A stretch of DNA of 33,868 nt from Octopus bimaculoides (Eukaryota): NCBI RefSeq assembly GCF_001194135.2, contig NC_068992.1:58432516-58466383 (forward strand), written 5' to 3'. The first letter of the stretch is position 1; every line of letters starts with the position of its first letter. Shown here piece by piece: positions 9,526 through 33,868 of this stretch. A program made the position numbers and the translations under genes. The notes below the pieces were generated by a model. The model was not told where the DNA came from. It worked only from the letters and a program-made list of their open reading frames with translations, and searched no databases.

Positions 9526-9647
9526 TCAAAGTTCAGTAAAAGGTAATAGTGCTAAACCAGGTGAAGAATTAAACCCACCAATCAATTCAAGAACAACTAG
9601 GAATGCAAAGAAAAACCAAAACAAATACTGCAAAACACAGAGGTGAA

Positions 9648-9935
9648 CATGGCAGCAAGTTTGCTTCCCAACCATGTGGTTTCAGGTTCAGTCCCACTGC
9701 AGAGCACCTTGGGCAGGTAAGTGTCTCCTACTATACAAAATCTATTTGCATGGCTTTGTCCTTGTGAACAGATTTAGTATACAGAAACTGAAAGAAGTCT
9801 GTTGTGTACACATATGGAAACAGATGCGGGTTGGCGACAGGAAGGCCATCTGGCCATAAAGAATCTGCCTCAACAAATTCCATCTGACCCATGGAAGCAT
9901 GGAAAAGTGGACATTAGAACAATGATGATGATGGT
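9648..9935 (+). mobile_element. Decayed SINE family B with (TGA)n tail
   Basis: ttgcttcccaaccatgtgg..ggttcagtcccactgc..ccttgggcagg; ends ctgacccatggaagcatggaaaagtggac..gatgatgatg. Confidence 0.6.
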
Positions 9936-10403
9936 TACAACACTGATAGAGATTTCTCATACTGATGCAAAATTATAAGTTCATAAAACAGATTCTGTAA
10001 ATGCCCAGTTTGAATTCCTGTGACTCTACAGAGAACAAAATATAACAATTATCACTCATCAAGGTTGGAAACCAGGATAAAGCTAAACATGGCATCTGTC
10101 ATTTCAAGAAGTTTGTGCATGAATTTGGATTATCATGAGAGGGGACTATTCCAGATAATCAACCTGATTCTCATAGCACTGATTTCCTAAATCAGTTGGA
10201 AGGTGGGTCAATGTAATTAGTAGTATACAAAGACACAGTGGAATGGTGAGGGCAGTCTGTATATCCCACTGAACTCTGAGGTGCGATTCTCACAGCACTG
10301 CTGTTTGACATTACCTTTTTGCCTGATGAAAGTTGACCACTGATGGTTAAAGAGTTCCCTTATACAGTTGTTGGGAAAGTCAGTCTTCAGATATATAGAG
10401 TGA

Positions 10404-10650
10404 CATCATCATCATCACTTTTTAACAGCCATCTTCCATGTTGGCATGGGCTGGACAGTTCAAAAGAATCTCATTGGCTGGAAGACTGCCTTGTGCTCCA
10501 ATACCTGCTTTGGTACGGTTTCTATGGTTGGATGCTCTTCCTAACACCAACTACTTTACAGAGTGTACTGGATGCTTTACTTTTTCTTATGGCACCAACA
10601 CTAGTGAGGTTGCCATGTAGCTCACAAAACCAACATCCCATTTGATTGAG
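10404..10650 (-). mobile_element. SINE or LINE-tail family C fragment
   Basis: (cat)n then ttccatgttggcatggg..ggatgctcttcctaacacc. Confidence 0.55.
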
Positions 10651-11460
10651 TGGAACTACAGTACAGAGAGAGACAGCTTAGTACTTACCTGTTATCAACA
10701 GTCAATTTTTTTTTTTTACTAAAGGATTAGTAAATAAGTTATTATACTTGTGAGATAAGTGTAATAGTTGATTGATGGACTTTCAGAATAGCAATCACTA
10801 CATCATGGAGAAGGAAAGAGACAATCAATTGAGTGATTGTTTAATGGTTTATTAACTAATCCTTTGCTAAATAAAAACATTGGCTGTTGAAAACAGGAAA
10901 GTATGATTAGCTCTAGGTCAGGCAATGAGAGACAAAAATGTATGAAAGGGATTGGAACAAGTTTCTTCATACTGTGATTTTTCAATGCCTGGCTTTTCAC
11001 AGAGTTTAAGACTTGTTGGCTACACTCAATCCGAATAAAGCATGACTATCAACCAATTTAATTCCTCTTCAGCCAAAGAATGTGGCCTTCAAACAGAAAA
11101 AAAAAATCACTATTTTGAAGTGTTGCTGGTTGGTCATAAACTAGCATTGTGATTAAACATATACCTATGTTCAAAGATATTTCAGTTATGGCCACTCCAT
11201 CCTGTTTTCAGAGTCGACGTATCTCAAGACAACATTTTCCAATGCAATGCGAACATTTTTTTTTCATATTGAAGGGTGTAATTTGAGCTAAATCTTGGCT
11301 GTTGTTTCTAGCAAGTGGAGTGACTATATGGAGAACCTCTCGTATGATGATGATGTCTCTAGGAACTTGTGAAAAAAATGATTTACAGTTTAAAACCAAA
11401 ACAGTAATTTAATATAAGATGCATAACTATGAACTGGCAAAAATTAAATACAAAGGCATA

Positions 11461-11830
11461 GGCATGGCTGTGTGGTTAAAAAGCTTGCTTCTCAACCATG
11501 TGGTTTGAGGTTCAGTCCTACTGTGCAGCATCTTGGACAAGTGCTTTCTATTATAGCCATAAACTGACCATAGACTTGTGAGTAGATTTCATAGAAAGAC
11601 AGTGAAAGAAGCATGTTGTGTGTGTGTGTGTGTGTGTGTCTGCACATGAGTATCTGCATGTTTGTTTACAGTTGCAGTTCTCTGAAAACTGCTTTATTCC
11701 TTCAAAGACATGTGGAATAAAATTTTTTAGTCTAAAATCAAGTAAAAGTGAGTGACAGGAAGGGCATCTGATTGTAAAACAACACCTTGATAATTTCATC
11801 TAATCCATGCTAACATGGAAAAATGGATAT
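11461..11830 (+). mobile_element. Decayed SINE family B
   Basis: ggcatggctgtgtggttaaaaagcttgcttctcaacc head; ccatgctaacatggaaaaatgga tail. Confidence 0.6.
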
Positions 11831-12880: not shown

Positions 12881-13326
12881 AATCCGTGGCCCTAAATTAT
12901 AAATCGTGGAGGTGCGTGGTTTAATGATTGTAAGATTGTGGCTTCAATTCCAAGACCACACGAAGCTTTGTGTACTTGAGCAAAACACTTCATTTCATGG
13001 TACTCCAGTGCACTAAGCTTGTAAAAATGGGCAATCCTGCAATGGATTGGCATCTTGTCTGGTGTGGGGAGGTATATATACCAAAGAATCTGGGAAACCA
13101 GCCTTATAAGAGCCTATGGTTGAGGAAGGACCTTTGATCCTTTTTCTTCTTTCTTTTCAAGTTGCTAATTCCTAATTAATTACAAGAAAATGTGTAAGAA
13201 TTGTTTAGTTGATCATTACAGGAATACACATAAGGATTGCTTAGTTGCTAATTGTAAAACTATTATTAGTAAGGATTGTGAAAATACATATAAGGATCAC
13301 TTGGCTGTAAATTGCAAGAATATATA

Positions 13327-13527
13327 CTCTTTTACTTGTTTCAGTCTTTTGACTGTGGCCATGCTGGAGCACCGCCTTTAGTCGAGCAAATCGACCCCAA
13401 GACTTATTCTTTGAAAGCCTAGTACTTATTCTATCAGTCTCTTTTGTCGAACTGCTAAGTTATGGGGACATAAACATACCAACATCGGTTGTCAAGTGAT
13501 GTTGGGGAGACAAACACAGACACAAAA

Positions 13528-13564
<37 letters not shown>

Positions 13565-13727
13565 CGACGGGCTTCTTTCAGTTTCCGTCTACCAAATCCA
13601 CTCACAAGGCTTTGGTCGGCCCGAGGCTATAGTAGAAGATACTTGCCCAAGGTGCCACGCAGTGGGACTGAACCCGGGACCATGTGGTTGGTATGCAAGC
13701 TACTTACCACACAGCCACTCCTACGCC
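13327..13727 (-). mobile_element. SINE family B, near full length
   Basis: tRNA-like head at the right end, internal (TA)n, 3' tail matching 1-230. Confidence 0.8.
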
Positions 13728-16661
13728 TATATGTAAGGATTACTTAGTTGCTAAGTACAAAAATATATGTAAGGATTATTTAGTAGCTAATTCGATATGA
13801 TGTTCAATAAGGTTAACTTTAAAGCAGCAAATAGCCCAAATTAAAAACAAAAAAAAATTTAAATACTAGCATAAATTTAAATTGTAGCCCAATGTGGCCG
13901 ACCAGCTTGACACAATGTGAGAAGTCTGGATCTTTGAAAAGAGAGAACAAGGGAGTTGTAGTGGGCTGGTGCTTCATTTATCAATATTGAATTACAAATT
14001 CACTTCGGCAGGATACGAAGTCAGAGCGCAGAAGAACAAAAGACCTGGGTGAATGCAAAGCATTTTATCCAACGCTTTCACAATTCAGTCAGTTTGCTAC
14101 CTTATGATTTCCCTAAGTACCTTGATCAATTAGCTTAGAATGAACTTCATCTCTCGAGTTTCATGAAAGGTTATTGTATAAAGCTTCATACCACCTTTCA
14201 TAAAGAGAATGGAGTGCAATTTGTTTAAAAGTTTCATTTCAATTTGTTTCTTTTCTTTTCCGGTTCAAATTCCGCTGAGGTCGATTTTGCCTTTCATCCT
14301 TTGAGGGTCGATAAAATAAGTACCAGTTGAAAATTGGGGTCGAGATAATCAATTTGTTCTCTCTGTCTAAAATTGCTGGCCTTGTGCGAAAATTTGGAAC
14401 TCTTTCTCTCTCTTCTAACGTTTTTAGTTTGAATTCTAAGGTCTCAACATCGTCTTCCATTCCTCCAAAGATCAAAATCGTATTTGTGATGATTGTTACA
14501 TTCAAATTTTCTCCTCTTCTCTAATTTGTATCCTTGAACCAATGAAGGAAATCACTATTCGTCTCGTGTTATCTGTACTTCATTCTTTCGATGGAAGTAA
14601 CCAAAACCAGTGCTAGTCACGAGTTTGAGTAACACACGATATGGAATAACCCTGTTGACTATCTACAATTAAGTTAAGACTCAGGGGAGAAAGAGCACAA
14701 AGTGAGCAGTTGAGAAAGTTCAAGAATAACAGTGAACTTTAAAATAACCACCTGATAGATTTGGTAAACTGTATTAGGGGTGATGACAGCGATACAGAAA
14801 TGTTTAGAGGTGAAGGAGGAAGGATAAGGGAGAAAGAGATAAGATGCATGTTTGTTTCTGCAAGAAGTATTCTATAGAGTAACTATATGGTTACTATTGT
14901 TATTGAATGCTAAATGTAATATTACACACGTACACACACAGGTTTAGTGGATGAAAAGAGAAACAGAGCAATGTTTATTTTTAATCGACAGAAAATGACT
15001 CGAGGCACTCATCAAAGCTTAACATGCTATGCAGAAGTCTCGGCTGTAGAGACACTTTTGTAACTTTTCGCTGATAGATATACGGAAGATCAGACAAGAA
15101 AAGTAACAAATGACAATAAATGTATGAATATATAGGTTAAACTAAAGCGTTTGACCAGAGCACAAATACAAATGGAAAATAGTGTAATAGGTGTAAAGCA
15201 ACTTGCTCTGAACGAATATGGAAAAAAAAAATGTGCGCTCGCGATACATGTCTGAAAAGCCTTGGGTTTCGTTTCAAAAGTACTTGTTGAAATAGACAAG
15301 TATCAAGTTTCACATATGCTTGGAAACGAAAATCCAAGCGCTTGAGTAACGTTGTATTACAGTTCGTTATAACAATCTGCATGTGTGTGTGTGCGTGTTG
15401 AAGTGTAGCATTCATTGTCGTACAGTACACGTGGAAGTGACAAAATTGTGTTGACGTGAGAAAAGTTAAGTGATATATGAAGTTGGAGGTCGTAAAAGAG
15501 ATAGACGGTGATATGGGCAATCTGTCCGTGTGTTAAATTAGGAAAAGCATGAAAAAGATGCGTTTTTTGTGTGTTTATTATGCATATACTATCGATGTGA
15601 TGTGTTCATAACCATGTGTTTAAGTGAAACAGAAGGAAAGAATCTCTATGCAAGCTGAATCGTGAAATATTTATGAACATTTTCATGTTTGTAATATGTG
15701 CATACAAGGACTGTTGTTGCTTAGCAGCCAGTCAGCCTTGATCGAGCAGTCGTCTTAACCAAGTCGTCTCTATTGTGACCATCCCAGCTTTTTTTTTGCA
15801 TATTTATAGTTACATTAATCAACACGTCCTTCCTTTACGACGGTAGGGCGTGGTTTGAGGGAGATCTGGCCGTTATTTCTCGCAGGTCGAGCAATTATGT
15901 AGGAAGTGTGTATGTGTGTGAAAGTGATACGCGGTCTAGTTCTAAGAGACATGATGTTTTGCATATCGGAGACGAAAAGAGTGTCATTAATGAGATGTGA
16001 AAAAAAAAGTTAGAATGAAATGCGAGTACGACGTGTATTGAAAGCAAGGTGGGTCTATGAGTGTAATTGAGGGTATCACTAAAATGGGTATGTGGCTGGT
16101 GCGCCCCAGGACAGCTCTGATCGAGTGGTGTAAGATCAAAAACAGTCCTGTCGCGACTGTTTTTCCCTTTCCTACATGCAGAGAGGGGACCCAGGACTAT
16201 ACCATTCAACGAATTCATTTCTTAGACGATAATAAAGTGTGATTTGTGGGAGATTTGGCTGTTATTTCTAACAATCCGATCAACCACATAGAGGATCCCG
16301 CTTTGTCTTGGGTGGGTGTAAGTGAAATATGCACATGGGTACGTGTATGTGTGTTGTAAATAAGAGCAAGTTTGTGCAAGTGATGGGCGATTTGTTGTGA
16401 ATAAGATCAATCAGTGTGTGTGTGTAAATGATGTGTTGCGCGTCAAACCATGATTTTGTGCGCACAGACACATATATGGAAGAGAGGTGTCAATGTGACG
16501 CTGCAGTTCTTACGTAGAAATACAAATCATTTGTATTTCTTTTGTGTTTTGTTTTATTTTTAGCACAAAAAGAAAGGTTGTGAAGTTTATGCTTCAAACA
16601 GACTACAATAAATAAAATGAAACTTAATAAAGAAAAAAAAGATTTAAAAAAAAAAACTGAC

Positions 16662-18951: not shown

Positions 18952-19225
18952 TTAGGCAAATTTATTTTTCTAGAGAGCGACTCAGTTATTGCACGGTAAA
19001 GGTATTTTACTTCCGCATTAGATTCCTTCATGTAATTATTTATCGTAGAGAGCTGATCGTAGAACGATCACAGTCGGTTACATAATATTGAAAATATTTT
19101 AATTTTATTGAGTTTGGGGAGAGTATTCATATTGAGCAAAGGCGTTATCTAAACGCGATACAGTGTGAACTAGTTTTGTAATTTCCGTCACCTTTCGTTT
19201 TTTATACGTGTCTAATTGTTACGTA

Positions 19226-19964
19226 GTGGAGGCGCAATGGCCCAGTGGTTAGGGCAGCGGACTCGCGGTCATAGGATCGCGGTTTCGATTACCAGACCGG
19301 GCATTGTGAGTGTTTATTGAGCGAAAACACCTAAAGCTCCACGAGGCTCCGGCAGGGGATGGTGGCGAACCCTGCTGTACTCTTTCACCACTACTTTCTC
19401 TCACTCTCACTTCCTGTTTCTGTTGTGCCTGTATTTAAAAGGGTCAGCCTTGTCACACTGTGTCACGCTGAATATCCCCGAGAACTACGTTAAGGGTACA
19501 CGTGTCTGTGGAATGTTCAGCCACTTGCACGTTAATTTCACGAGCAGGCTGTTCCGTTGATCGGATCAGCTGGAACCCTCGNNNNNNNNNNCAATGGCCC
19601 AGTGGTTAGGGCAGCGGACTCGCGGTCATAGGATCGCGGTTTCGATTACCAGACCGGGCATTGTGAGTGTTTATTGAGCGAAAACACCTAAAGCTCCACG
19701 AGGCTCCGGCAGGGGATGGTGGCGAACCCTGCTGTACTCTTTCACCACTACTTTCTCTCACTCTCACTTCCTGTTTCTGTTGTGCCTGTATTTAAAAGGG
19801 TCAGCCTTGTCACACTGTGTCACGCTGAATATCCCCGAGAACTACGTTAAGGGTACACGTGTCTGTGGAATGTTCAGCCACTTGCACGTTAATTTCACGA
19901 GCAGGCTGTTCCGTTGATCGGATCAGCTGGAACCCTCGATGTCGTAAGCGACAGAGTGCCAACC
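19226..19964 (+). mobile_element. tRNA-derived SINE, shown twice across a 10-N gap (probably one insertion)
   Basis: A box TGGCCCAGTGG; one 12-bp TSD aattgttacgta at 19214-19225 and 19965-19976 encloses both copies (19226-19581, 19592-19964). Confidence 0.9.
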
Positions 19965-20710
19965 AATTGTTACGTATTTGGGAGCCGCTGGTAATCCTTA
20001 AGAATAAAGTCGGAAATCTTCCAGATCACCAAAAGCCGTAACCTCTTCGGATTTGTATGTTTTTAAACATCGAAGATTACGATTCTGCAAAACAAATACA
20101 AAAATCAAAATTTTATTCCTCCCACCTTAAAAACTTCTAAAAAAAAATTTTTTAAATTCGAAACGAAACATAACAAAATAATTGGGATATTTGTGAAAAT
20201 CTATATTTGCATAATCGTAATTTCTGATGTCCAACAAAGCAGAAATCTGAAAAAATATTTTGAAAAAAAAAAAAAAAGTAAGAAAAAAGAAATAAAAAAA
20301 GGAAACAGTTCGGAAAAGGGGAGGGGGAATATTTCAAATTTTATTTTTTATTTGCTTTAGTCATCAGACTGCAGCCATACTCGGGTACCGAATTTAAAGG
20401 GTTTAGACGAGCAATTTTAACCTTAGAACTTATTTTTTTAAGCTTGGTACTCATTCTATTGATCTATTTTGACGAACGACTAGATCATATGGATGTAAAC
20501 GAACCAACAGCCAGTCGGTTGCTCCACCTCCATTACCAATGTTTCATTTCCGAAATCATAAAACTTCTCACCTTTCTTTTCCTTCAGTTCTAATGACTTT
20601 CTTCTTCATTAGCATGCTGCACAATTCCCCTCGACTCATTCCGTGCACATCTCTCCTAGCATCTGTCGCTGGTTACGATCCATCTTTTCCATTGAACGTG
20701 TCTCCTAAGT

Positions 20711-20933
20711 CAGGAGTTTTCAAACTGTGGTCCGCGGACCACAGGGGGTCCGCAAGGACAAGACAGGGGGTCCGTAGACAGCAAATACTTTTTATGGGCA
20801 ATTTGATTTTATATATGTCTTTTAATCGAAATCTTTTAATTGACAATAAACCTATTTGTTAAATACTGTTAAATAAATAAATGCAAAAATATATGTTATT
20901 TTAAGCAAATATTTATGTATAAATTTCATAAGC
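20711..20933 (+). mobile_element. hAT (Charlie-like) non-autonomous element, left end only
   Basis: CAGGAGTTTTCAAACTGTGGTCCGCGGACCAC..GGGGTCCG terminus typical of Charlie-type ends; no right TIR found. Confidence 0.55.
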
Positions 20934-21084
20934 ATTTTCGAAATCACAGAACTTCTCACTTCTCTGTTCCTCCAGTTCTAATCCAAACTACTGCACTTCT
21001 TTGAATTTCACTTCACTAACATCATTTCCAATGTCTTACTGACTGAATAACTTGCTCAGCTGGAACTTAGCCCCAGGTTCCAGT

Positions 21085-22560
21085 CAACAAGAAGAAGTCG
21101 ATGAGGAATCTTCGAAAGAGGAAAGTCTCTGCCCTCAGACCTTTCAACCTCGTTCACTACACAACCTTCTAGAAAGAAATTATAGTTATAGGAAAGCATT
21201 GCAATCGTCACAAAGGCTCCATTGATAGTTGGATCCGTCCTACACGCAACAACAGCTGTTCAACAAAGCATTATAAGCCAACAATGCCCGGACACTGAAC
21301 GAGTGCTTGCAGCATTTTCTTTTTCGTGTTTTAGGGCATGAATCTTAGCTCTAACAAAGTAGCCATATGTTTTGCGTTGAAGAAATAATAAAGGACCATT
21401 CTCGATGCTAGCAAATTAGCACGATGTATTTACTAACCACCTCTTTTAGATTTCTGACTAGCTACCCCTCCACTCTAATCATGAGATTGAGGCCTGTGTA
21501 GCCGATCAAATTGAACTGTGGACATCTTACACTGTTCACAACACCTAGTTGTGCTCCTCAGACCTAAAATTCCTAATTTGCTCAATCAACTTAGATAAGA
21601 CTCGTAGACAGGGACCTTACTCGCTAGCCTGACAAATACTCTATCCAGATTCAATGCGTATGATCCATTGTGGCTGCTCCACGTTTCTACTGACCAGTGG
21701 CGGCTCGTGTATAGGCGCTGCGAAATTGCAGCACCCCCTATCTCCACTCGATATTATCGATAATATTCAATATAATGAGTCCTTGTTTCTTTAATTCTTT
21801 CTTTATACTTGTACATTATATAATCCTTAAGCTTAATGTCAGTAGCCATCCCCTAGTTATGAAAAAAAATACAAAAATCCTTGTATACAAATGTGCGCTT
21901 CACAGTTCCAGCGACACGGTGTTTGGCTGATGTGCGCATGCTCACATGCCCGAGATAGGAAGCTGCTCGCTAAGGAGAAAGAGCACTGTCGTTCATGCAG
22001 TGCTTGCCCTTGTGTGCTGGTGAAAGGTAGTGTTTCTTTTTGACTTCGCGTGTATTGTGCTTAAAAACGTGTTTATATTATTGAATGTGATAAAGTGTAG
22101 AATTAGATTATTATCCTGCTTCCAGCTACATTGTTGCTGTCAGGATTTGAAAAATAGGGCAGACTCCCCCCTTATTTTGTGATTTAGGGGGATTTTTGAA
22201 AAACAAAGGGGAATTTGCAGCGGTGTTCAGTGAACAAATTAAACACACTACCCAGCAGTGGCTAAAACGCGAACCGATCAAGTTTATGTATTAATTTTTC
22301 TTTTTATATGTTTGTTTCCTTTTACACAATACTAAAACAACGGCTAAAAATCTTCTGAAGCTGTACCCTCACTAATTTTATCTGCGAGCCGCCACTGCTA
22401 CTGACATATTAGGAAAATCCATTCAACACTTGTCAGACATTTGGAAACTTCTGAGTAGGTTTTCGAGGTTTTTGTATCCCATCTTCTTACGTGTTTGCTC
22501 TACACAGTCCCACTATGCATCAAAATATATTTCCAACAACTCATTTGTTGTCCCTAGAAA
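21085..22560 (-). mobile_element. L1/Tx1 LINE relic (endonuclease, linker, C-terminus; RT missing), interrupted by a MITE
   Basis: NLLRSFQMSDKC*MDFPNMSVETWSSHNGSYALNLDRVFVR (APE C-terminal), GYFVRAKIHALKHE (linker), LQALVQCPGIVGL*CFVEQLLLRVGRIQLS and TRLKGLRAETFLFRRFLIDFF (C-terminal). Confidence 0.7.
21695..22397. mobile_element. Non-autonomous hAT transposon (MITE-like), 703 bp
   Basis: Perfect 13-bp TIRs CAGTGGCGGCTCG / CGAGCCGCCACTG; perfect 8-bp TSD ctactgac at 21687-21694 and 22398-22405. Confidence 0.92.
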
Positions 22561-23363
22561 AGCTTCCAGACATTTGAAGCTTTTTAAACATAACATACCT
22601 TCGACTTCAACAAACATACGTATATAAAGTGGCCGCCCTGTAACAGGTTGTACACTCCAACCTATATTACTGACTCGTTGTCCATACGAGGCCCAAATGT
22701 GTTATGGGGAACTTCGCGGATGAGTTTATAGTTGGAGGCGATGAAGGAGAGGTGAGCCGGCAATTTTAAGTCAGATGCTGCACGAGGACAGAGGCTGCCG
22801 AATCTCACAAAAAACTCCACATGCTGCCTCCAAGTATTGTGAAAAATGATGTTGCAGATGAATTGCGTAGATGAACGGATAGTGGCTTCTAGTTTGTCGA
22901 GATGTCCTAAATGGAGATAACATGGTGCGCTGCGCAGCGAAAGAAGAATTTGGCGGAGGTAACAAAAACCCTAGCCCTAACTCAAACACCGGGTGTGCGT
23001 ATTCTTTAGGTAGAACGATACAGTTCTTCAACATAAACAGGACTCGATAATAATTAATTAGGTGCAACATGTGGGCAATCTTTATTGGGTTCTCACGGTT
23101 GGATTCTGGGCATAAAAGGACAAATTCCTTTTTTTTTGTATCGGCCGCTGTTAAAACCGCAGCTAACTTTTGTCCTTGGAGTGTCATTCTCTTCCATCAA
23201 ATTGGGATGAAAGCACTGCGCCTCAGGAATGAACATCATGAGACAGAATGGTCAATCTAACGAATATCATGTGTGTTTGCTTTTAGTTTCTTTCTTTTCT
23301 CTTTTTTTTTGTTGCTATGTATAAGTACTGAATAAAAATATTGAAATAAGCTTCATTTCGTAG

Positions 23364-23398
<35 letters not shown>

Positions 23399-24164
23399 CA
23401 CATACATACACACGAATCAACAAAAACGTCTGTTTGTTCGCATGAGCTGCTAGAATTAGCGGGGGGAAATGTCTCAAATAATATCTTACATAATATNNNN
23501 NNNNNNTAATATCTTACATAATATCAAAAATAACAACGGATAATATAGTATGTATTAGATATAATGACTGAAAAAAAAGTTGGGAGATTAGTAATTTCTG
23601 GAATGTTTTTTGGTCATAAGTCTGCAGTAGCTTGGACTAAAGAAGAAGAACAACACACTCACGTGCGTTCATATCAGCATTGAAGTAAACGTAAATATTA
23701 CCATGTGTAAGAGAACATTAATTAGTAAAATTAAAGAGTTACGACTAATGACTCTTTTCCGGTACCTACTCCACCGATGTTGAAATCAATAATATTAATC
23801 CAATGTGTACATTTATTCAGAACCGATTTTTATCAACAGGGAGTCAAATTCAAAGTAATAGCGTTGAAGAGAGGAAATAAGTTGTTTAAAAAAGAATGAC
23901 GCTAAACAAACGCGATATTGCCAACTGTCTGACATTTTCATGAAGGATGGATATTAAAATGAACATAATAGATAAGAATCCCGCTTTTTGAAGATATATA
24001 AAATCAGTAAGCTTTTTGATTTTCATTTCTCGTGTGCTTATTTGCATAATTCGGTATATATACAATTATATATTTCTTCATGTTATATTTTTCTGCATTC
24101 CTCTGCCTCGCTCATCCAATCAAATATTGTGGACGATTTAAATTTCATTAATTATGGTGGAATT

Positions 24165-26567
24165 ATGAAGCTACAGACATTGCTAAGCACATATGTTTTA
24201 ACCGTCCTTCTACAACATTCAGACGAGGAACAGCTAAGTTCAGATTCCGATACGTATCTGACCGTACAACTTCTGGTAGATATGCAAAGTCCCGAACAGC
24301 AGAAAATGGATCGTTTTTTTAACATTGAAACTATGATTGATTTATCGACCAAGCAATTTTATTTTTTCGAAGATTCACTAACTCTGCGCCTTTACGTTCC
24401 CAACTCAAAGATCGGTTATCCCATTCAATTTTTGCAATTTGTCAACAACCAACCATACGAAATAGCTTACAATCAAACTTGTAATAAAAATAAAAATACC
24501 GAAAATTTCTGCAAGCAAACTAATGAAGGCAGCAAATCGTACAAAATCAAAGGGTACTGTTGTCCTGAAAGTGTTCAGATTCGTTGTATTCTCTATGATC
24601 CTTTATGGTATTCTATTAATACGCTCGACGACCCTGTAATCATTCAGGGTATAAGAATGGAGGTCTTAACAAAGGAAGCAGGCGCCGAAACAGATGATCT
24701 AAAGAAAAGAGTCGCCGAAAGCAGTCGTTTTCTTGTCAACGGCAAAACTATCGAGAAGGAAGACGATAAACTTTATTTCACGGCCCGCGTTCATAATCTG
24801 GCTAACTCTACTTCTTCTACTTGTAAAAACCCAATTTGTCCAAAGTTAAATTATTTATTGTTACCAATTTCAAGAACACCATCAAACAACAGTCTACAGA
24901 ACATGGAAGGTGTTCGTGAATACTTGCTTATCAAGAAGAAAGATTTTGATATAAAAGGAATACTGTGTGCTACAACTGGAATATCTATCGGTTCTGTTTA
25001 CAGAAAGAACGACAGATGTTCAGACACCTTTGTAAAAGCTTGCTCCAAAACTCAGCCTGACCAAAATGAGGAGATAAGAAACAGCGGTACCCATGCAAAG
25101 AAATCAAAATATTTTCTATCGAAGTTTGCCGCACCTGTAGCCCCTTATACTGGGAAAATTCCTGGCTGGAATTCTAATAAGACATTGTTATTTGTAGCAA
25201 ATACAAAGCGTTCAGATAAAGCGAAGCTGGAAATTATTATAAATCTCAATAAAAACCTTTTTCCTCTTGCAATTCCATTAATAGGTAAAGGTTCTATCAG
25301 AACTATATACAGCCATCCATTTACAGATTACGACAGCCAATACGAGTTTGGAATAAATATTCTTAACACAGGGCTAGTTACAGGAAACTTTAAAATATTA
25401 TTAAACTGTGAACCGAAAAAACAGTTCAAGACATTTATATTGATGCCATTTCAAGGACAAATAGTGAAATTTTATCAGAGTATTGATTTAACTATTGAAA
25501 GAGAAAGCGACAACACTACCTCTAAAAACGCCAATAAAAAACTGTTTCCATCGCAGTGTCGAATAGAATTATGGAACGAAGATGATAAAACAATGAATTC
25601 AAAAGAACTTATTTTAAAAGAAAACAAAACATGCATATGTTTAGTCGGTTGTAAATGTAGTTGTGATCTACCATACAAATGCGAATTGACAGACTCGAGA
25701 TCTACCACTCAATCTCCTGTCACAGAAGCTCCCCGTGACAAAACATGGGTTATTGTATGCACAATTTTACTTTTACTTATGCTACTCAATTTACTAAAAT
25801 TCACTTTTGGCTTTTGCTTCCCAATTCCCGTTGGTGAAGCAGGGCTGTGTGTTTTTATAAAAAGTAGCTATCAGTGTGAATATCTCGAAAAAGACCTTGA
25901 GCAAAAAGCAGTAGAGTACGATGAAGACGGTTACCCAGTGCATCCGAAAACTAAAGAAAGAGCGCGTGCTTTGCAGTACAAGACAATGGGTGCTCTGAAT
26001 TTATTATTCTTCTTTTACTTGCCATTTATTGTCTTGCATTGGCTTTTAGTACGAACGAAAATAAATAAAAAGAAAATGGATATATCGTGGGAAAAATTAG
26101 AAACAACTGTTGAAATGGTCAAAGAAGGCGACGAAAACTTTGGTTTGCACCGTACTTTGCGAAGAACATCATGTCAAACAATATCATCAGATCAGTCCGA
26201 ATTGCCGGATCACATCCAAGAAGAAAGGAATTGTATATTAGAGGAATATGGTAGAAGAATATATAGAGGGAAATGTCGTGAGGATTCAGTGTCAAAATCG
26301 TTGGAAAAGTCTCAGAAATTATCCATGAAGGATTGCCAACGAAAGAGTAAATTTAAAAGTGTGTTTGATAATTTTCGAAAAACAGAAAAAGAACCCAGTT
26401 CAATTGAAAGTTCAGACTGTCAGAAAAGTGTAGGGGATAATCTTTCAGCATGTCACATACCTGATATAACCCAATGTATTCGCGACGGTCATGAGAGTAG
26501 TTCATCATCTGAGCGTTCTTCGTGTTCAACACTCAAGAGAACTCCTATAAAAGATAAATGTTCTTGA
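24165..26567 (+). CDS. HAP2: HAP2/GCS1-family fusexin (gamete fusogen homolog), single-exon ORF, 800 aa from the first ATG
   Basis: Ordered motifs: VNNQPYE..C..C, GYCC..RCILYDPLWYS, DIKGILCATTGIS..DRCSDTFVKACSKTQ, KYFLSKF, domain III NTGLVTGNF..NC..QCRIELWNED, stem CICLVGCKCSC, TM at 25746-25817, long Ser/Lys/Cys-rich tail. The reading frame is open upstream to 23976 without an ATG, so the start is uncertain. Confidence 0.88.
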   Translation: MKLQTLLSTYVLTVLLQHSDEEQLSSDSDTYLTVQLLVDMQSPEQQKMDRFFNIETMIDLSTKQFYFFEDSLTLRLYVPNSKIGYPIQFLQFVNNQPYEIAYNQTCNKNKNTENFCKQTNEGSKSYKIKGYCCPESVQIRCILYDPLWYSINTLDDPVIIQGIRMEVLTKEAGAETDDLKKRVAESSRFLVNGKTIEKEDDKLYFTARVHNLANSTSSTCKNPICPKLNYLLLPISRTPSNNSLQNMEGVREYLLIKKKDFDIKGILCATTGISIGSVYRKNDRCSDTFVKACSKTQPDQNEEIRNSGTHAKKSKYFLSKFAAPVAPYTGKIPGWNSNKTLLFVANTKRSDKAKLEIIINLNKNLFPLAIPLIGKGSIRTIYSHPFTDYDSQYEFGINILNTGLVTGNFKILLNCEPKKQFKTFILMPFQGQIVKFYQSIDLTIERESDNTTSKNANKKLFPSQCRIELWNEDDKTMNSKELILKENKTCICLVGCKCSCDLPYKCELTDSRSTTQSPVTEAPRDKTWVIVCTILLLLMLLNLLKFTFGFCFPIPVGEAGLCVFIKSSYQCEYLEKDLEQKAVEYDEDGYPVHPKTKERARALQYKTMGALNLLFFFYLPFIVLHWLLVRTKINKKKMDISWEKLETTVEMVKEGDENFGLHRTLRRTSCQTISSDQSELPDHIQEERNCILEEYGRRIYRGKCREDSVSKSLEKSQKLSMKDCQRKSKFKSVFDNFRKTEKEPSSIESSDCQKSVGDNLSACHIPDITQCIRDGHESSSSSERSSCSTLKRTPIKDKCS

Positions 26568-27200
26568 ATTTCATTGGCAGAATTTGTAAAACAGTTTAAT
26601 ATAAAAGATGCCATTGAAAATATTTGTAAATCTTGGAGGAAAGTGACAACCTGCAACATATTTTACCATTGTTCATTGGTAGAATTTGTGAACCTGTTTA
26701 ATATATCAAAAGAAAAAAAAACGCCATTGAAAATATTCTTGAATCGTGGGGAAAAGTGAAAACCAACATATTTGACCTCAGTGTGCTTAATATTTCACTG
26801 ACACACTGACCAGAGGAATTTTTTTGAAGAAATACTTAACATTAGAATAGAGCTTGGTTTCGTAAAAATAGACGATATAGATGTTGACGATTTATTTGAA
26901 TCCTATTCGAAAGGACTAACTCTCAGGACATTCTTAATGTAGATCAACAAGCGGGCATACAACGAAGACGAAACTGAGTCGATAAAATGTACCACAAATT
27001 AAAGGAGTGACTAAAATAATTTTGTGTTATGTTTCTCGAATATGAAATTTAAACTATTTGTGATGAATATCGATCCTAACGAACTTCATAACTATAGACA
27101 GTTACAGGCAAGGGCAGCGAAAGGAAAATATATTAATGCGTATCAAATTACCATGGTTAAGTATTTTTATTTTTTCAAAGGGAAAAATTCGTGAAAAGAT
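26568..27200 (+). mobile_element. pogo/Tigger-type transposase C-terminal relic
   Basis: LAEFVKQFNIKDAIENICKSWRKVT (DDE_1 C-terminal pattern), then EEILNIRIELGFVKIDDIDVDDLFESY; ~90-bp internal duplication (about 26570-26660 vs 26674-26770). Confidence 0.6.
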
Positions 27201-27977
27201 TATTTTCCGACGTTTTTATGTAGACTGCAGTAAAACAATGTTGCATTTCCAATAAATTGTTGAATACTAAACACATTTTCACCTGTCCTTATTACATTTT
27301 CTTCTGTAAGGATAAAACATAAATGATAATATAGTGATCAAGTGTTTTCACACATATACACACGTGCACACTCATACATACATGATTATAATACATTTAA
27401 AAGTAGACAAGGAATATAATGAATAAATCTAGAATTTTATACATTTGAATAAGTCTGCTGATTACATTCGAAAGTATATATGCATACTGACATGCGCACA
27501 CACACACCCCCACACACACATGCACATACATATATGCACTGTGGTTGTCGACTTGTAGATGAATATGACCATCTGTGACAAATGATCCTTTCCTAGATCT
27601 TAATGACAATGGTTATCAGCAATACCCGTGCTGAAATCTAAAGTCAATAACAGCTTGCACAACACTGCTACGACTCCCACCTACAAAGCCAAGTAGTCTA
27701 GAAACAAGCAAGAACAACATCTCTTGCTTCGGAATTTCTTTCTCATAGAGTGATGTCTAAACAAAGAAAAGGAGGATCTCACTCCCAGTTATTGGATAGC
27801 CTTAACTCTATTGAGTTCATCCGTCCTTTCACTGGATTTGTTTTTCGTCCTGCAGAGTGTTCCCTGCAAACAGCCCTCCTTACCAAGCATGCTTTGTAGG
27901 GTTGCCGGCCCGACCATGCGACAGGTTGTATTGGTTACATGTTACTAGTAGCACCACGAGTGACCTGACAACATCTG

Positions 27978-27981
<4 letters not shown>

Positions 27982-28047
<66 letters not shown>
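27982..28047. repeat. (CA)n microsatellite
   Basis: Perfect dinucleotide run. Confidence 0.95.
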
Positions 28048-28048
<1 letters not shown>

Positions 28049-29245
28049 CACACACGCGTTGCAAGAGGAGAGAGAAAACTGCTGCTCAGTAAAGCTGTAT
28101 ATAGGAGTTAGGAGTACACCTTTCTTGGTATTACTGTCATAACTGAGAATGAAGTAGGTCTAGTGACACGATTCAAGACGATTAGAATATTTTACTAGCT
28201 CTTGAAGTCTGCTGGAGATCCAGCTTTTCAGAAACCACTTTGAAGCTGACTACCACAGTTGTTTTCTTTCTCAGGGTATAAGCCATTAACGTTTTAGTAT
28301 TTTTCTTCTTGCACTCACCGCCAGGGTTTACAGAGCGGTGAATATTAAGCGTCTGGGTATATCTATCAAAGTTGGACTACGCACTACATACCGAAACTCT
28401 CAGTTCCTCTGAGCTTCCTTGTTAAGTTGACATAGGCCCGCAAAGCATCCAGCATCCAGTTAGTGTATATTGTCACAGGGAGGTTAAGCAGAAACCTTGT
28501 TGAACAAGGAGTCACAGACCTGACTGCTTTCCGCTTCATCAGTTGAGCTATCCGGTGGTGTGTGTAAGAACTACTGCACTAGAGCAACACACCGACCTTC
28601 ACCCACACACACGTACGCATGCGCACATATAGCATCCCTCGACTAGCACGTTAACTGGTACCGTGAAAGCACATCTTCCGTGCTAACTGACAACAATAAT
28701 CTATATAAATACAGTAATTTGTGCAAGAACATTTTCAATATGCGGTTGGATTTATGAATTAGTTTTACCATATTTTAATGTGATATAATAATAAAAAGTA
28801 ATGAAAATGTGTTCACTCTTCAACAGTTTATGGGAGCGAATTGGCAGAGTCATTTGAGCATCGGCTGGAATGAATGCCTTACGGTATTTGTCTCTGCTCT
28901 CTACAGTCTATGATCGAATCTCACTGCGACCAACTTTGCCTTCTATCCTTTCGGGGTCGATAATTAAAATGCCTGTCAAAGATCCTTCCCGAGTTACTCT
29001 CGTAAGATCGCTTTCTCGGATTCTGTGGCGCATGTATCGCTTTAGCTGCTAAAAGTAGCAGTCGCGCCGTATTAAAAACAAGGAATTTTGAAGAATATCT
29101 TTATCCACAGCAGCAATTGTGGATTCTTATTTTTGCATAATGTTTTCCTTCTCTTATCGTCAACACATGAAACTTGTTACTTCCGATATGTCGATCAGCT
29201 AGAATTAGCAAAATTTCCAACTCTAAGGTTTGCAGGGTTGTTGTT

Positions 29246-29450
29246 GAGCTCGCAGAAACGTTAGCACGCCGGGCGAAATGCTTAGCAGTATTTCGTCTGT
29301 CTTTACGTTCTGAGTTCAAATTCCGCCAAGGTCGACTTTGCCATTTCATCCTTTCGGGGTCGATAAATTAAATACCAGTTGCGTACTGAGGTCGAGCTGA
29401 TCGACTGGCCCCCTCCCCAAAAATTTCGGGTCTTGTGCCTAGTGTAGAAA
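29246..29450 (+). mobile_element. SINE family A
   Basis: gagctcgcagaaacgttagcacgccgggcgaaatgcttag..gagttcaaattccgcc..tcctttcggggtcgataaa. Confidence 0.75.
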
Positions 29451-29451
29451 A

Positions 29452-29532
<81 letters not shown>

Positions 29533-29556
29533 CATCATCATCATCATTATTATTAT
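29452..29556. repeat. (TAT)n/(CAT)n microsatellite
   Basis: Long trinucleotide run at the SINE 3' end. Confidence 0.95.
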
Positions 29557-29789
29557 ATATAATTAAGAAAAGACGTAATCTATCTTAATTAATGCGATAT
29601 TCTATTTGTCCGTGACTCCTGTATCTCAGCTCTACATTGGCATATACCTTTTTGGAATCAGGATGATTCCGGGATTGAAATTCTGCCCTTCCTTTGGTTC
29701 TTGAACATTCAACATCGGGTTCTGATTTAAAAGCATTTGGGTTGCTATTTTTAGCAGGTAAAGTTTGGCTGAATCACGTCATCTTGGTT

Positions 29790-30190
29790 GGCGTTTGTCA
29801 GATGACATCAGAGATCACAGAGAAGATAAATGACATTAGCTTCATTAATTTTACATTGAGATAGGAATTTTTGGAGGCATTCTTTTCCAAAATAGGTTAG
29901 TTTCAGACATTGAAAATAATCCCTTTCAATTATATTGTTGATACTGCATTTTTCTCCATATTTGCAACCTTCCCTCTTATACGAATATTCTGAATTACAA
30001 ATCGAGATTTGAATCTAACAAATCAACCAGAACATGCAGAAAATGTTTGGTAAACTCCCGCTGAAATTAATTAAAAAAAAATTTTATATGTGTCTTTCAA
30101 TTGTAGAGGAAAACCCAAAGCTTTCATTTTAAAAACCATGGTGCTTGGAAGAAATTCTATTCCTCGTTGCTAGTTTACTCGAAGTTAATG
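29790..30190 (-). mobile_element. pogo/Tigger transposase N-terminal relic (CENP-B-type HTH to first catalytic motif)
   Basis: Minus strand KMKALGFPLQLK, FSACSG*FVRFKSRFVIQNIRIRG, LFSMSETNLFWKRMP (cf. FxASxGWFxRFKxR and FNxDETGLFWKRMP). Confidence 0.6.
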
Positions 30191-30284
30191 TAGCTTTACT
30201 CTTATAAACTTCTTATAGAATTGTTTTTTATTAACCATTATTCCTATTATTATTACATTGATTCACAAGTATCAATTTATATTT

Positions 30285-30517
30285 CTTTTCTTTACTACCC
30301 ACAAGGGGCTACACACAGAGGGGACAAACAAGGACAGACAAACGGATTAAGTCGATTATATCGACCTCAGTGCGCAACTGGTACTTATTTAATCGACCCC
30401 GAAAGGATGAAAGGCAAAGTCGACCTCGGCGGAATTCGAACTCAGAACGTGAAGACAGACGAAATACTGCTAAGTATTTCGCCCGGCGTGCTAACCACTC
30501 TGCCAGCTCACCGCCTT
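30285..30517 (-). mobile_element. SINE family A, full length with TSD
   Basis: 13-bp TSD tcaatttatattt at 30272-30284 and 30518-30530. Confidence 0.85.
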
Positions 30518-31163
30518 TCAATTTATATTTGCCTTGCCATCTCCGCGTTCTTATTTTTTATGACCTCCAGTTTGCTCTCGCTTTTCTCTTCACACCAGAA
30601 TTTTTCTCGGAATGTTTTCTTCCATTCATGTTCATTGACGATAAATTGCATCCTCACAGAGGAGAGCGACACGATTACTATAAGAAGCACAGAACTAGCA
30701 ATGGTACCACTATATACATACATATATACATTCACATATAGGAAAGAGCACCTCTTCGGTAGAAATATTGATTTCATACAGGTTGAAAATCCACCTTCAG
30801 TGGCTTAAACACTCTATAAATATATACACTAAATTCAAGGGCTCAATTGTTTAACATGTCGTTAAACTACAATATATTGTAAGTTCAATGCAATATCCAT
30901 TATAAGAATGAGTTTGTCTAAAGATGAATTGGCTAAAAAGAAAAAGAATAAAAAGCAAAGATGTCACTGATATATCAAAATTCCATTCTTAAGTTCAGCT
31001 GCTGTTTCCACAGTTAAAACACAAACATCCTCATCATCCATTTACTAGTTTTGTCGTTCACCGAGGTATTTATATTTTTAAATAAAAATAGCCTCCTTAT
31101 TTCCCAGATTCCCAACATTCCGCTCAGTGGTGACCATCATATTCTGATTCTTACACCTCTGGA

Positions 31164-31535
31164 AGTGGAGGCGCAATGGCCTAGTGGTTAGGGCAGCGGA
31201 CTCGCAGGCATAGGATCGCGGTTTCGATTCCCAGAGCGGGCGTTGTGAGTGTTTATTGAGCGAAAACACCTAAAGCTCCACGAGGCTGCGGCAGGGGATG
31301 GTAGCGAACCCTGCTGTACTCTTCCACCACAACTTTCTCTCACTCTTACTTCCTGTTTCTGTTATGTCTGTAATTCAAAAGGTCAGCCTTGTCACGCTGA
31401 ATATCCCCGAGAACTGCGTTAAGGGTACACGTGTCTGTGGAGTGCTCAGCCACTTGCACGTTAATTTCACGAGCAGGCTGTTCCGTTGATTGGATCAACT
31501 GGAACCCTCGACGTCGTAAGCGACGGAGTGCCAAC
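31164..31535 (+). mobile_element. tRNA-derived SINE (same family as 19226), full length with TSD
   Basis: A and B boxes; 11-bp TSD acacctctgga at 31153-31163 and 31536-31546. Confidence 0.9.
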
Positions 31536-31760
31536 ACACCTCTGGAGATGGATACATTTTCCTTCGAAAGAAAAGAAGCATTTGTATAAGAATATACAGC
31601 TTGCGAACGGTACTTCCGCCGGGGGATCTGCCATATTTATTACATATTATGTGCTATATTACGTAAGCCTATAAAATACACATCCACATTGTTTATAAAG
31701 TACTTAGCCTATATGCATATATTTATGCCGTCTGTTGGCTGATACCTGGACAAGTATTTT

Positions 31761-32400
31761 TCATGGAGATGGCTCTGAATTCTCCAACTCTATATTTAGT
31801 ACCCCCTGACAGGTTGCAGAAGTGATTCTATCATCAATGAAAGGCAGCTTTAGAAGGCAAACATTGTCGTATGAGGTTTGAACATACTTAGAGATCTTAA
31901 TACATGGCTGTTTTCTGATGAAGGGTTCAGGATATCCATTAATAATACTCTTTTGAACAACTCTGTGTTGGTGATTGTATCTCATTTCACTACATTTGTT
32001 GTGTATGAGAAATTTCATTCTGTGCGGGGATGACTTTGGTGAGGCTGGTCTGTAATGCACAAATAGAACACAGCAGGTAGCTTCGCTGTGGAACCAAATA
32101 TTAATGAATGTACCTTCTGCGATTCTAAGTCGGGAATCGAAGAGAGCGAAAGAGATGGGGAGAGATCGAGATCCAACGAGGTCAGGATATTCCATTTTAA
32201 AGTCTGTGGAAGATCATGGAAAAATGCCAGCCGTACTTCAATAGCAGCAAGAAGTGCAGGTTATGCCTGGCTGAGAAGAGAGCAATTTTAAGGAGTATCC
32301 ATCACCCGGATGCTTGCCTGAATAGTAGGAGTGAGATGTTTAACCCTTGCCCACATGAAAGGAAGTACATCCTATCGTACCTGCGCACCCCAACATGACT
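31761..32400. mobile_element. Penelope-like retroelement relic, two fragments in opposite orientation
   Basis: Plus strand LWKIMEKCQPYFNSSKKCRLCLAEK..LNSRSEMFNPCPH (GIY-YIG C-terminal CCHH region); minus strand LIHNKCS..INGYPEPFI..LKLPFI (RT thumb-like). Confidence 0.6.
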
Positions 32401-32584
32401 GCAACCACAAGTCCCCGGACTCAACCTTCCACCAATGACCTCGTGCCCGACAAAAAGCTTGACCAAAACACACGCCAATGCACCCATGCACACACACACT
32501 CACCTCTATAAGGCAGACACCTCACAAAATATACTGTCTCCCACCAACACTCCAACATATACCACTTCACACACATTATACCCT

Positions 32585-32595
32585 CACACACACAC

Positions 32596-32632
<37 letters not shown>

Positions 32633-32730
32633 AAGAAAGAAAGAAAGAAAGAAAGAAAGGAAGAAATAAAGAAAGAAAGAAAGAAAGAAAGGAAGAAATA
32701 AAGAAAGAAAGAAAAAAGGAAAGAAAGAAA
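32585..32730. repeat. Compound (CA)(TA)(GA)(GAAA) microsatellite
   Basis: Visible in the sequence. Confidence 0.95.
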
Positions 32731-33767
32731 AATAACGATCATTATAACATGCGTTTCCATTAATGAAATCGATTTCAAGTATATGTGATTCTCGTTACTA
32801 CTACGTTATAGCCCGGGTCCGTATTAATGATGGTAACAAGTTGACGAGAGCTCAAGAGAGTTAAAATGCGTGAGAATAAAAACAATTCCTATGGGCTTGT
32901 AAATATGAGGTTGAGTTAGTGTGTGCTTGTAGTTAGATGTGTGAACAAGCCTCTTCAGCACTTAGGTGTTTGATGCGTGTGCATGTGCATGACTACTTTG
33001 TAGATGCACACACCTAAGTGTGTACAAATATTCATCTAAAGGGAGGTAATATTTGTCCCCACTTAAACGTGGGTGTTCTGTTAGAACAAAGTATGCTGTG
33101 GTAATTATCACGAGATAAACTCTCATATTGGCTTTTGCACTCTTGTATATATTGCCATCTCTAGCGAGACCACCATATCACGTGATTTTGACCTTCTTTG
33201 ATCATGTCAATGATGGACACTCGACCGCTAGAAATAGCAGCTATTCATCTCTCCATCAGAGATATATAGAATAACGGTGCCAGAACAGGCGCTAGTGTCA
33301 CGATTAGCCAGTGAGCTTGTTAAAAAATATATATTAATGACAGACGCACCATTAATACAGAGAGGTATCCTCAGTTAAACGTGGATGTCCTGTTAGAACA
33401 AACTACACTGCGGTAATGACCACGAGAGAAACTCGTATACTGGCTTTATTGTTTATATAGCTAGCGTAGAGATAAATCTCCGCCACCTCCTATGCTGAAA
33501 CCGCCAGATAACGTGGTCTAAAGAATCTCAACGGGCGAATCTATGGGGCAGCTTACAAATTTTTGCTGTGCCGCTAATAGCTTGGATTTGGAGGAAGCAC
33601 GTTTGTGTCTTTTGGTCTTTCTTAGAAAATATTAACATTTCTGGGGCTTTGCGCAAATCCGTATTATGTATGTCTCTTCTGTTTTTTTAATTATTACAAA
33701 TCTTCCACTGAGGAGGGAGCCGGTTTCCAACAAAGATGTATGTATGTATGTATGTACGTATGTTTGT

Positions 33768-33868
33768 AGCTTGCTTACCAACCACATCGTTCTGGGTTCA
33801 GTCCCACTGGGGCAAGTGTTTTCTACTATAGCCTTGGGCCGACCAAAGCCTTGTGAGTGGAATTGGTA
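33768..33868 (+). mobile_element. SINE family B head (cut by window edge)
   Basis: agcttgcttaccaaccacatcgttctgggttcagtcccactggggcaagtg..ccgaccaaagccttgtgagtgg. Confidence 0.7.

Follow-up and report, generated by a model that had tools for sequence, protein, structure and literature searches.

The stretch of DNA analysed here, referred to throughout as the window, consists of 33,868 nucleotides of contig NC_068992.1 of Octopus bimaculoides (assembly GCF_001194135.2, positions 58,432,516 to 58,466,383 of the forward strand). It contains a complete, single-exon orthologue of HAP2/GCS1 at 24165..26567 (+), made up of 800 codons and a stop, which is recognised by its open reading frame (ORF) and its Pfam match and is also open in Octopus vulgaris. 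To our knowledge, no gamete fusogen other than HAP2 is known from across the eukaryotes. Functional evidence for HAP2 in bilaterian animals is scarce, and the mechanism that has been studied so far relies on hydrophobic elements of the cd loop that are held by a conserved arginine. What is new here is the combination of a single exon, an approximately neutral rate of change in a frame that is strongly maintained, and a lineage-specific clade from which the fusion loops have gone completely. HAP2 in a mollusc is not new in itself, since databases label bivalve and nemertean proteins 'hapless 2-like'. The gene was earlier described as lost from most bilaterians (PMC2766252) and has since been reported in annelids and insects (PMC6089408). 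In a literature search we found no paper linking HAP2/GCS1 to octopus, and a looser search for 'hapless 2' in cephalopods had none among the 12 papers listed.

A single-exon HAP2 gene

The longest ORF of the window runs from 23988 to 26567 (+), and the runner-up in the ORF listing across the 33.9 kb is only 195 amino acids (aa) long. The first ATG of the HAP2 ORF is at 24165, with an A at -3 and an upstream in-frame TAA at 23973-23975, and from this ATG the frame continues for 800 residues to a stop at 26565-26567. At a stop probability of 0.068 per codon, given the composition of the window, the chance of 800 open codons is ~3e-25. All of the 20+ HAP2 relatives align to window positions 24162-26330 colinearly and in one frame, and no further exon-like match to these relatives was found elsewhere, either in the window or across the 21.7 kb of the O. 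vulgaris locus. The intact, intronless ORF of 2.4 kb that was reported in the initial annotation is therefore open over all 800 codons and aligns in one frame to every relative.

Window positions 19071-33090 are colinear with O. vulgaris chromosome OX597825.1, with a non-coding substitution divergence of ~7%, a level that points to a species of Octopus other than O. vulgaris. The colinearity bears out the earlier attribution of the sequence to an octopus or other cephalopod genome and not to a contaminant. A word-indexed protein search returned one relative, a 561-aa 'hypothetical predicted protein' of O. vulgaris that carries a HAP2 domain label in UniRef and is 81% identical to the query across its C-terminal 70%. 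The deposited O. vulgaris model (positions 10001-11686 of the locus) starts at an internal Met, so that the signal peptide is left out together with half of the HAP2 ectodomain, the N-terminal one. This model is N-truncated, because the ORF is open upstream in the same frame: the full-length ORF of 798 codons spans 9290-11686 of the locus and has the same start (MKLQTLLSTYVLTVLLQHSDEE) and the same stop as the ORF of the window. The window protein is not in a collection of 15 billion proteins, so that HAP2 is unannotated in the window's own genome. The initial annotation had left the annotation status undecided, and the gene proves to be partly annotated, through the truncated and UniRef-labelled O. 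vulgaris protein. A correction is due in both species, as HAP2 is missing from the protein set of one and shortened at its N-terminus in the other.

Both a profile search and a fold search were needed to identify the protein, because a single-sequence phmmer search against the PDB gave only a marginal HAP2 match (E=0.9). The sole Pfam match is HAP2-GCS1 (PF10699), with 68.7 bits against a gathering cut-off of 27.4 (E=5e-19), and it covers aa 106-488 of the octopus protein and positions 120-469 of the 515 in the profile. A family profile matched the HAP2 sequences of the PDB with E-values of 1e-55 to 1e-74. An AlphaFold2 model of aa 1-535, based on a 19-sequence alignment and of moderate confidence (pLDDT 66, pTM 0.48), is mostly beta. 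When it was compared to the PDB with Foldseek, the top 8 matches were HAP2 crystal chains from Cyanidioschyzon, Arabidopsis and Chlamydomonas (E 7e-20 to 2e-16). Weaker matches were to archaeal Fsx1 (1e-12), EFF-1 (3e-10) and then bunyaviral Gc and alphaviral E1 (no better than ~1e-9 to 1e-11 for the viral proteins), and the best viral model in BFVD gave an E-value of 8e-12. The HAP2/GCS1 identity that had been proposed from the letters of the sequence is thus upheld by the Pfam profile, the fold and the nearest relatives, and in the structural comparison suggested at the same time HAP2 comes out best, ahead of Fsx1 and EFF-1.

By hydropathy and alignment the protein fits a type I topology, with an N-terminus resembling a signal peptide, an ectodomain, a Cys-rich stem, a transmembrane (TM) anchor and a cytoplasmic tail. 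The predicted signal peptide, MKLQTLLSTYVLTVLLQHS (aa 1-19; 24165..24221, +), is a hydrophobic N-terminus recognised by eye that aligns with the N-terminus of P0002, the nearest relative beyond the octopuses. The PF10699 region (aa 106-488; 24480..25628, +) comprises class II domains I-III according to Pfam, the AlphaFold2 model and Foldseek, and six N-glycosylation sequons are present in the ectodomain. The Cys-rich stem, CICLVGCKCSCDLPYKC (aa 490-506; 25632..25682, +), is conserved family-wide, with C490, C492, C498 and C500 invariant or nearly so, and is followed by the TM anchor (aa 525-546; 25737..25802, +), which has a Kyte-Doolittle maximum of 2.43. Beyond the anchor lies a module that we define by consensus, alignment and hydropathy (IGxxGL...YDExGYPxHPxT...LNLLFFFYLP; 25803..26054, +) and that includes a second hydrophobic segment at aa 606-628. 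This module is conserved from arthropods to nemerteans to bivalves, and because all relatives, including those from arthropods, align through the TM segment and the module, the octopus gene is tied to the HAP2 genes of bilaterian hosts. The cytoplasmic tail (aa 631-800; 26055..26564, +) is rich in Ser, Cys and Lys and is fast-evolving, as judged from hydropathy, alignment and local dN/dS. A C-terminal cytoplasmic domain (YYN..S.SPFL.NS..FSLCG ... YPCLN) that is common to P0002 (aa ~1060-1163), the Solemya protein P0003 (aa ~760-841) and other bilaterian HAP2s is missing from both octopus proteins. The possibility that this domain is encoded by a separate downstream exon was rejected, as tblastn searches with P0002 and P0003 found none in the 7.3 kb 3' of the gene in the window or in 10 kb 3' of it in O. 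vulgaris.

An exhaustive HMMER scan of 1.84 billion representatives gave only 20 matches, namely P0002, the bivalves Solemya velum and Pecten maximus ('hapless 2-like' in the latter), the nemerteans Lineus and Tubulanus ('hapless 2-like'), Hymenoptera, a beetle, a spider, a scorpion, the sponge Sycon and one dinoflagellate. P0002 is a protein of 1163 aa with an intact ORF and 32% identity to the octopus protein, and is known only from Logan assemblies (transcript or contig) of ENA runs ERR14857104, ERR12370320 and ERR12370321. The three 4.2-kb Logan contigs that encode it are identical except for the number of terminal A's. Searches for homologous proteins with P0002 and with a 15-sequence alignment as queries added no further members to the family. 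A phylogeny had been named in the initial annotation as a check. By neighbour joining, P0002 and the two octopuses group together with 100% bootstrap, at the end of a very long branch, and P0002 is nearest the bivalves. No second, canonical cephalopod HAP2 was found in the exhaustive protein search, the sensitivity of which is low with this divergent query. By its signature, fold, topology, stem, conserved Glu and Gln residues (described below) and phylogeny, the octopus ORF is a true if aberrant HAP2, and it is an animal gene of vertical descent and not a viral gene or a contaminant.

The HAP2 gene of Solemya velum (KAL5009314.1) has at least 19 coding exons across 45 kb, and the octopus ORF is unbroken over residues 48-676 of its product P0003, a region that includes at least 13 Solemya exon junctions. 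An intron-rich HAP2 gene is ancestral, since the genes of a sponge and a sea anemone have intron positions in common (PMC2766252). The wholesale loss of introns from the octopus gene is best explained by way of a reverse-transcribed mRNA, either as a retrogene or through cDNA conversion, and would have taken place in one step before the two octopuses split. Octopus HAP2 is a clear example of a gene from a fertilisation family that has lost all of its introns, and its rate of change is neutral or higher.

Loss of the cd loop

The octopus protein departs from other HAP2s at the tip of domain II (aa 129-143, KGYCCPESVQIRCIL; 24549..24593, +), where a turn of 4 residues between strands c and d takes the place of the ~35-40-residue cd loop that other HAP2s have. 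In the other HAP2s aligned, 30-45 residues centred on 'RGGQDC' lie between 'GFCCxC' and 'SAHCLxFDxxWYSV'. The corresponding MAFFT alignment reads KGYCCP-ESVQIR-CILYDPLWYS in both octopuses and QGFCCP-HVLEAH-CFMYDPVWYS in P0002. All three proteins lack ~35 residues that make up the whole cd loop. With it have gone the two fusion loops and the Arg on which Chlamydomonas HAP2 depends, and the lost segment includes RGGQDC and two Cys. The loss was seen in three ways, namely in the MAFFT alignment, in the alignment of the family profile to PDB sequences and with a hidden Markov model (HMM) of non-cephalopod HAP2s. With the family profile, the R of RGGQDC aligns with Chlamydomonas 'TRANLDC' (184TRA186, R185), and F192 and W193 are in the same segment. 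With the HMM, the octopus protein and P0002 are each split into two matches that skip match states 163-197. In the AlphaFold2 model, DSSP places predicted strands at aa 129-133 and 138-143, linked by the turn P-E-S-V. The conserved Arg was found in all of the non-cephalopod sequences aligned, from Chlamydomonas, Trypanosoma cruzi, animals and the dinoflagellate.

Other elements of the tip have fared differently. A conserved Glu (Chlamydomonas E126), which is the partner of the Arg, and a conserved Gln (Chlamydomonas Q379) organise the tip of HAP2. Both are kept in octopus, as E99 in PYEI and Q297 in KTQP, while P0002 has Asn at the Glu site. The ij loop of the octopus protein has lost 4 residues, among them a conserved Trp that P0002 keeps. 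The initial annotation had reported fusexin motifs in order, and their order is indeed right, but the fusion-loop segment is missing from the series.

In Chlamydomonas the cd loop is 40 residues long and forms two fusion loops around helix alpha0 (PMC5332557). The changes R185A, R185Q and delta-TRA abolished gamete fusion and liposome binding, and F192A/W193A impaired fusion and abrogated liposome binding (Fedry 2017, PMC5332557). Arabidopsis HAP2 from which the fusion helix of the cd region had been removed was likewise without function (Fedry 2018, PMC6089408). The loop-less octopus HAP2 is a natural deletion mutant of the region that these experiments found to be essential, and its predicted protein lacks one defining functional feature of the family, the cd loop with its conserved Arg. 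The loop-less form is old and has been maintained, because the deletion is shared with P0002, which is only 32% identical and has an intact ORF of 1163 aa. We also considered that the deletion might be an exon skip fixed by the retrocopying of a mis-spliced mRNA. This was rejected, as one Solemya exon encodes GFCC...AHCLRFDPVW and the deletion is exon-internal.

Selection on the gene and its surroundings

Selection was tested by comparing two species only, the window and O. vulgaris. Between them the protein is 82% identical and the coding sequence (CDS) 91.2% identical, and the method of Nei and Gojobori gives dN=0.092, dS=0.102 and dN/dS=0.90 (bootstrap confidence interval [CI] 0.64-1.32). 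The 211 differences in the CDS are spread over codon positions 1, 2 and 3 as 70, 73 and 68. In a neutral simulation with 211 substitutions of the observed spectrum, a mean of 11.2 stops arose and none of 20,000 replicates stayed open, compared to 0 stops observed. Syntenic non-coding DNA shows 57 indel events per 6,980 aligned bp (0.0082 per bp), a rate at which ~20 would be expected in the CDS, where only 2 were observed, both of 3 bp (Poisson P=6e-7). Columns that are conserved in non-cephalopod HAP2s have a replacement rate three times lower than the others (5.7% vs 18.6%; Fisher p=7e-4), and none of the 18 ectodomain Cys differs between the two octopuses. Because stops and frame-breaking indels are absent and replacements avoid conserved columns, we regard the gene as functional. 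This agrees with the earlier view that it has been kept under selection. Of the two signs of decay named along with that view, a dN/dS near 1 was found and disabling mutations were not.

The rate of change is uneven along the gene. Conserved columns have a dN/dS of 0.49 and variable columns one of 0.98. The most constrained part of the protein is the first 100 codons, at 0.34, together with the post-TM module, at ~0.5. Over codons 100-400 the dN/dS is above 1 but noisy (1.2-2.8). Divergence of the CDS from O. vulgaris, at 8.7%, exceeds the 7.1% of the non-coding flanks (19965-33090; p=0.012). This excess includes synonymous sites (dS 0.10), and selection, germline transcription-associated mutation or conserved flanks are candidate causes. 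Purifying selection acts on the reading frame and on the core that is conserved across the family. Elsewhere the protein changes at about the neutral rate or faster, and positive selection is suggested. Rapid replacement is typical of classical gamete-recognition proteins, and octopus HAP2 appears to be a functional and fast-evolving protein with a constrained core and a changing surface of the kind seen in that group.

The DNA around the gene has a GC content of 33-42% and is rich in repeats and stops. Immediately 3' of the stop codon, in what is either 3' UTR or flank, is a tandem duplication of ~105 bp (26570-26667 and 26672-26777, together 26570..26777, +; repeat families D2, D3 and D12), and O. 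vulgaris aligns there too. SINE-like repeat families of 200-400 bp are multicopy in the window and the O. vulgaris locus, with 80-94% identity, and occur at 1-217, 2589-2920, 13326-13732, 19226-19580/19592-19959, 31165-31531, 33766-33868 and other positions; one pair of them stands head to tail around a 10-N gap. As was noted in the initial annotation, nearby transposon ORFs are broken, for example a Tc1/mariner-type transposase at ~4920-5900 (+) that consists of HTH_Tnp_Tc3_2 (E 9e-10) and HTH_23 fragments with stops and frameshifts. No Pfam domain was found in open segments of at least 45 aa in ~4 kb on each side of HAP2. Among the microsatellites (23366-23393, 27983-28046 and 29453-29530), (AC)n tracts flank the gene and there is an (ATT)n tract of 78 bp. 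Runs of N, which are scaffold gaps of a draft assembly and total 283 N, lie at 3677-3806, 6922-7054, 19582-19591 and 23497-23506, the last of them ~660 bp upstream of the HAP2 start.

Possible roles and comparison with known systems

A role for this protein that we consider somewhat more probable than all others together is a non-canonical one in fertilisation, in which octopus HAP2 would take part in bilateral or partner-dependent fusion or act mainly in adhesion or recognition. From its family membership and its rapid evolution, the protein would still be found at the gamete surface during fertilisation. Merging of membranes by the unilateral insertion of hydrophobic cd-loop residues would not be possible for it. 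It could instead require a partner on the opposite membrane, in an EFF-1-like bilateral mode or in trans, or it could serve mainly in gamete adhesion and recognition, with fusion aided by other factors. EFF-1 has an acidic cd loop that is unlikely to bind lipid, is required on both membranes and is proposed to act by zippering in trans (PMC8784728). The gene had been put forward originally as a candidate for sperm-egg fusion; as a HAP2 under selection it is still such a candidate, but without the cd loop and the Arg it should not simply be taken for a sperm fusogen of the canonical kind. It is possible, and here we are more doubtful, that the lineage has kept long-term and under selection a HAP2 that is free both of introns and of the membrane-insertion apparatus, that is, the cd loop, the Arg and part of the ij loop.

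If octopus HAP2 were nevertheless a canonical unilateral sperm fusogen, other elements of the tip, such as the c-d turn (PESV/QI) or the bc or ij loops, would have to supply non-polar contacts, in the way that Trypanosoma cruzi HAP2 uses its three short loops, and the loss of the cd loop would be one more variant of a hypervariable tip. The tip is the most indel-prone part of HAP2 and its insertion motifs differ by lineage (PMC6089408, PMC8784728), E99 and Q297 are kept, and the ORF is under selection. However, the Arg occurs in every non-cephalopod sequence aligned and a positive charge at this site is essential in Chlamydomonas, while nothing in the octopus protein aligns with it; the turn that is left, P-E-S-V, is short and includes an acidic residue; and the ij loop is 4 residues shorter, without the conserved Trp that even P0002 has kept. 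We therefore think this unlikely. We regard as about equally unlikely a repurposing outside fertilisation, in which a retrocopy with a new promoter and a new role would act in somatic cell-cell fusion or adhesion, like nematode EFF-1 and AFF-1. A single-exon structure implies new regulatory surroundings, and a protein that has lost its fusion loops and its C-terminal cytoplasmic domain would differ in mechanism or regulation. Nothing speaks for such a role positively, however, and a replacement rate at or above neutral fits reproductive proteins better than developmental fusogens. The exhaustive protein search, with the low sensitivity that this divergent query allows, also returned no second, canonical cephalopod HAP2.

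Octopus HAP2 could also be a relic that is drifting towards a pseudogene and is open by luck. The dN/dS of 0.90 with a CI that includes 1, the equal numbers of changes at the three codon positions, the loss of functionally validated elements and the lack of annotation in one genome and truncated annotation in the other would all agree with decay. But ~11 stops and ~20 indels would be expected in that case and are absent in both lineages (P ~1e-5 and 6e-7), substitutions avoid conserved columns (p=7e-4), and the deletion is common to the 32%-identity P0002, whose intact ORF of 1163 aa points to a long-lived loop-less form; a relic is in our view very improbable. Most improbable of all would be a class II envelope protein of an endogenous virus or retroelement (for example of the Atlas type of nematodes and hookworms), or a contaminant. 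The class II fold, the single exon, as in virus-derived genes, and the recovery of viral Gc by the fold search are what such an origin would predict. HAP2 structures are nonetheless ahead of viral ones by ~8 orders of magnitude in E-value, the Pfam match is HAP2-specific, and the post-TM module is common to multi-exon host HAP2 genes of bivalves, nemerteans and arthropods. Within ~4 kb to either side of the gene, the open segments of 45 aa or more contain no reverse transcriptase, gag or integrase domain. The gene is single-copy in the window, and its flanks contain host repeats and have a syntenic counterpart in a second Octopus species. A viral origin or contamination was rejected on the basis of this synteny, the HAP2-best fold and the domain-free flanks.

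Several points weigh against a non-canonical fertilisation role for a retroposed and loop-less HAP2. A gamete role in cephalopods would follow from family membership and rapid evolution only. The case for function is made from frame maintenance and the pattern of sites in two species, and a dN/dS near 1 with an even spread over codon positions is also typical of relaxed constraint. P0002, which is the basis for regarding the loop-less form as deeply shared, comes solely from Logan contigs that may be mRNA or genomic. The tip of HAP2 is hypervariable with many indels (PMC6089408), so other loops might supply the membrane contacts, and the AlphaFold2 model is of only moderate confidence. As for retroposition, a search around the CDS for a poly(A) remnant or target-site duplication gave nothing convincing, the short matches being at chance level only (e.g. 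14 nt at 23985 and 26821) and the one A-run short (~26708-26722); an old insertion would have lost these hallmarks. No parental, intron-bearing copy of HAP2 was found in the exhaustive protein search, again at low sensitivity with so divergent a query. The initial annotation had called the gene retroposed or otherwise mobilised. The single exon, against at least 19 in a bivalve, speaks for this, while a poly(A) tract, a target-site duplication and a parent with introns did not come to light. Retroposition is what we infer from the structure of the gene, and intron loss in situ by cDNA conversion may also account for it.

The octopus gene makes it possible to ask whether the HAP2 scaffold can work without fusion loops of its own, bilaterally or through a partner, or whether the job of the protein has changed. 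If octopus HAP2 still fuses sperm and egg, it would do so with no fusion loops of its own, through a bilateral mechanism like that of EFF-1 or via a partner on the egg side. If it does not, a gamete fusogen would have become, in a bilaterian, a protein of recognition or adhesion that evolves fast.

When compared to other animal HAP2s (those of Pecten maximus, Lineus longissimus, Tubulanus polymorphus, Hymenoptera and Solemya velum KAL5009314.1), the octopus protein shares PF10699, the ectodomain, the stem, the TM anchor and the post-TM module, for which the consensus is IGxxGL...YDExGxPIHPxT...LNxxFFFYxP, and it groups with a mollusc-like relative. It differs in being only 18-24% identical to them, in being encoded by one exon as opposed to at least 19 in Solemya, and in lacking ~35 cd-loop residues, 4 ij-loop residues with the Trp and the C-terminal domain ending in YPCLN. 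The gene resembles processed retrogenes in having a complete CDS without any of the ancestral introns, and differs from them in that the searches brought to light neither a convincing poly(A) remnant or target-site duplication nor a parent copy. The HAP2 structures of Chlamydomonas, Arabidopsis and Trypanosoma (5MF1, 6DBS, 6E18, 5OW3 and 5OW4) include the best structural matches to the octopus model, and the octopus protein has equivalents of E126 and Q379. These proteins insert elements of the cd loop into the target membrane (loops 1 and 2 around alpha0 with R185, the alphaF helix, or short loops), whereas octopus has a 4-residue turn at this place. With the FF family of Caenorhabditis elegans, EFF-1 and AFF-1 (4OJC), octopus HAP2 has no sequence relation beyond the fold, being a HAP2 by sequence, and bilateral action in octopus is only a hypothesis drawn by analogy. 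The two have in common the class II fold (E 3e-10) and a domain II tip that is not hydrophobic, and EFF-1 provides a precedent, as a fusexin that has no classical fusion loop and yet brings about fusion when it acts from both membranes.

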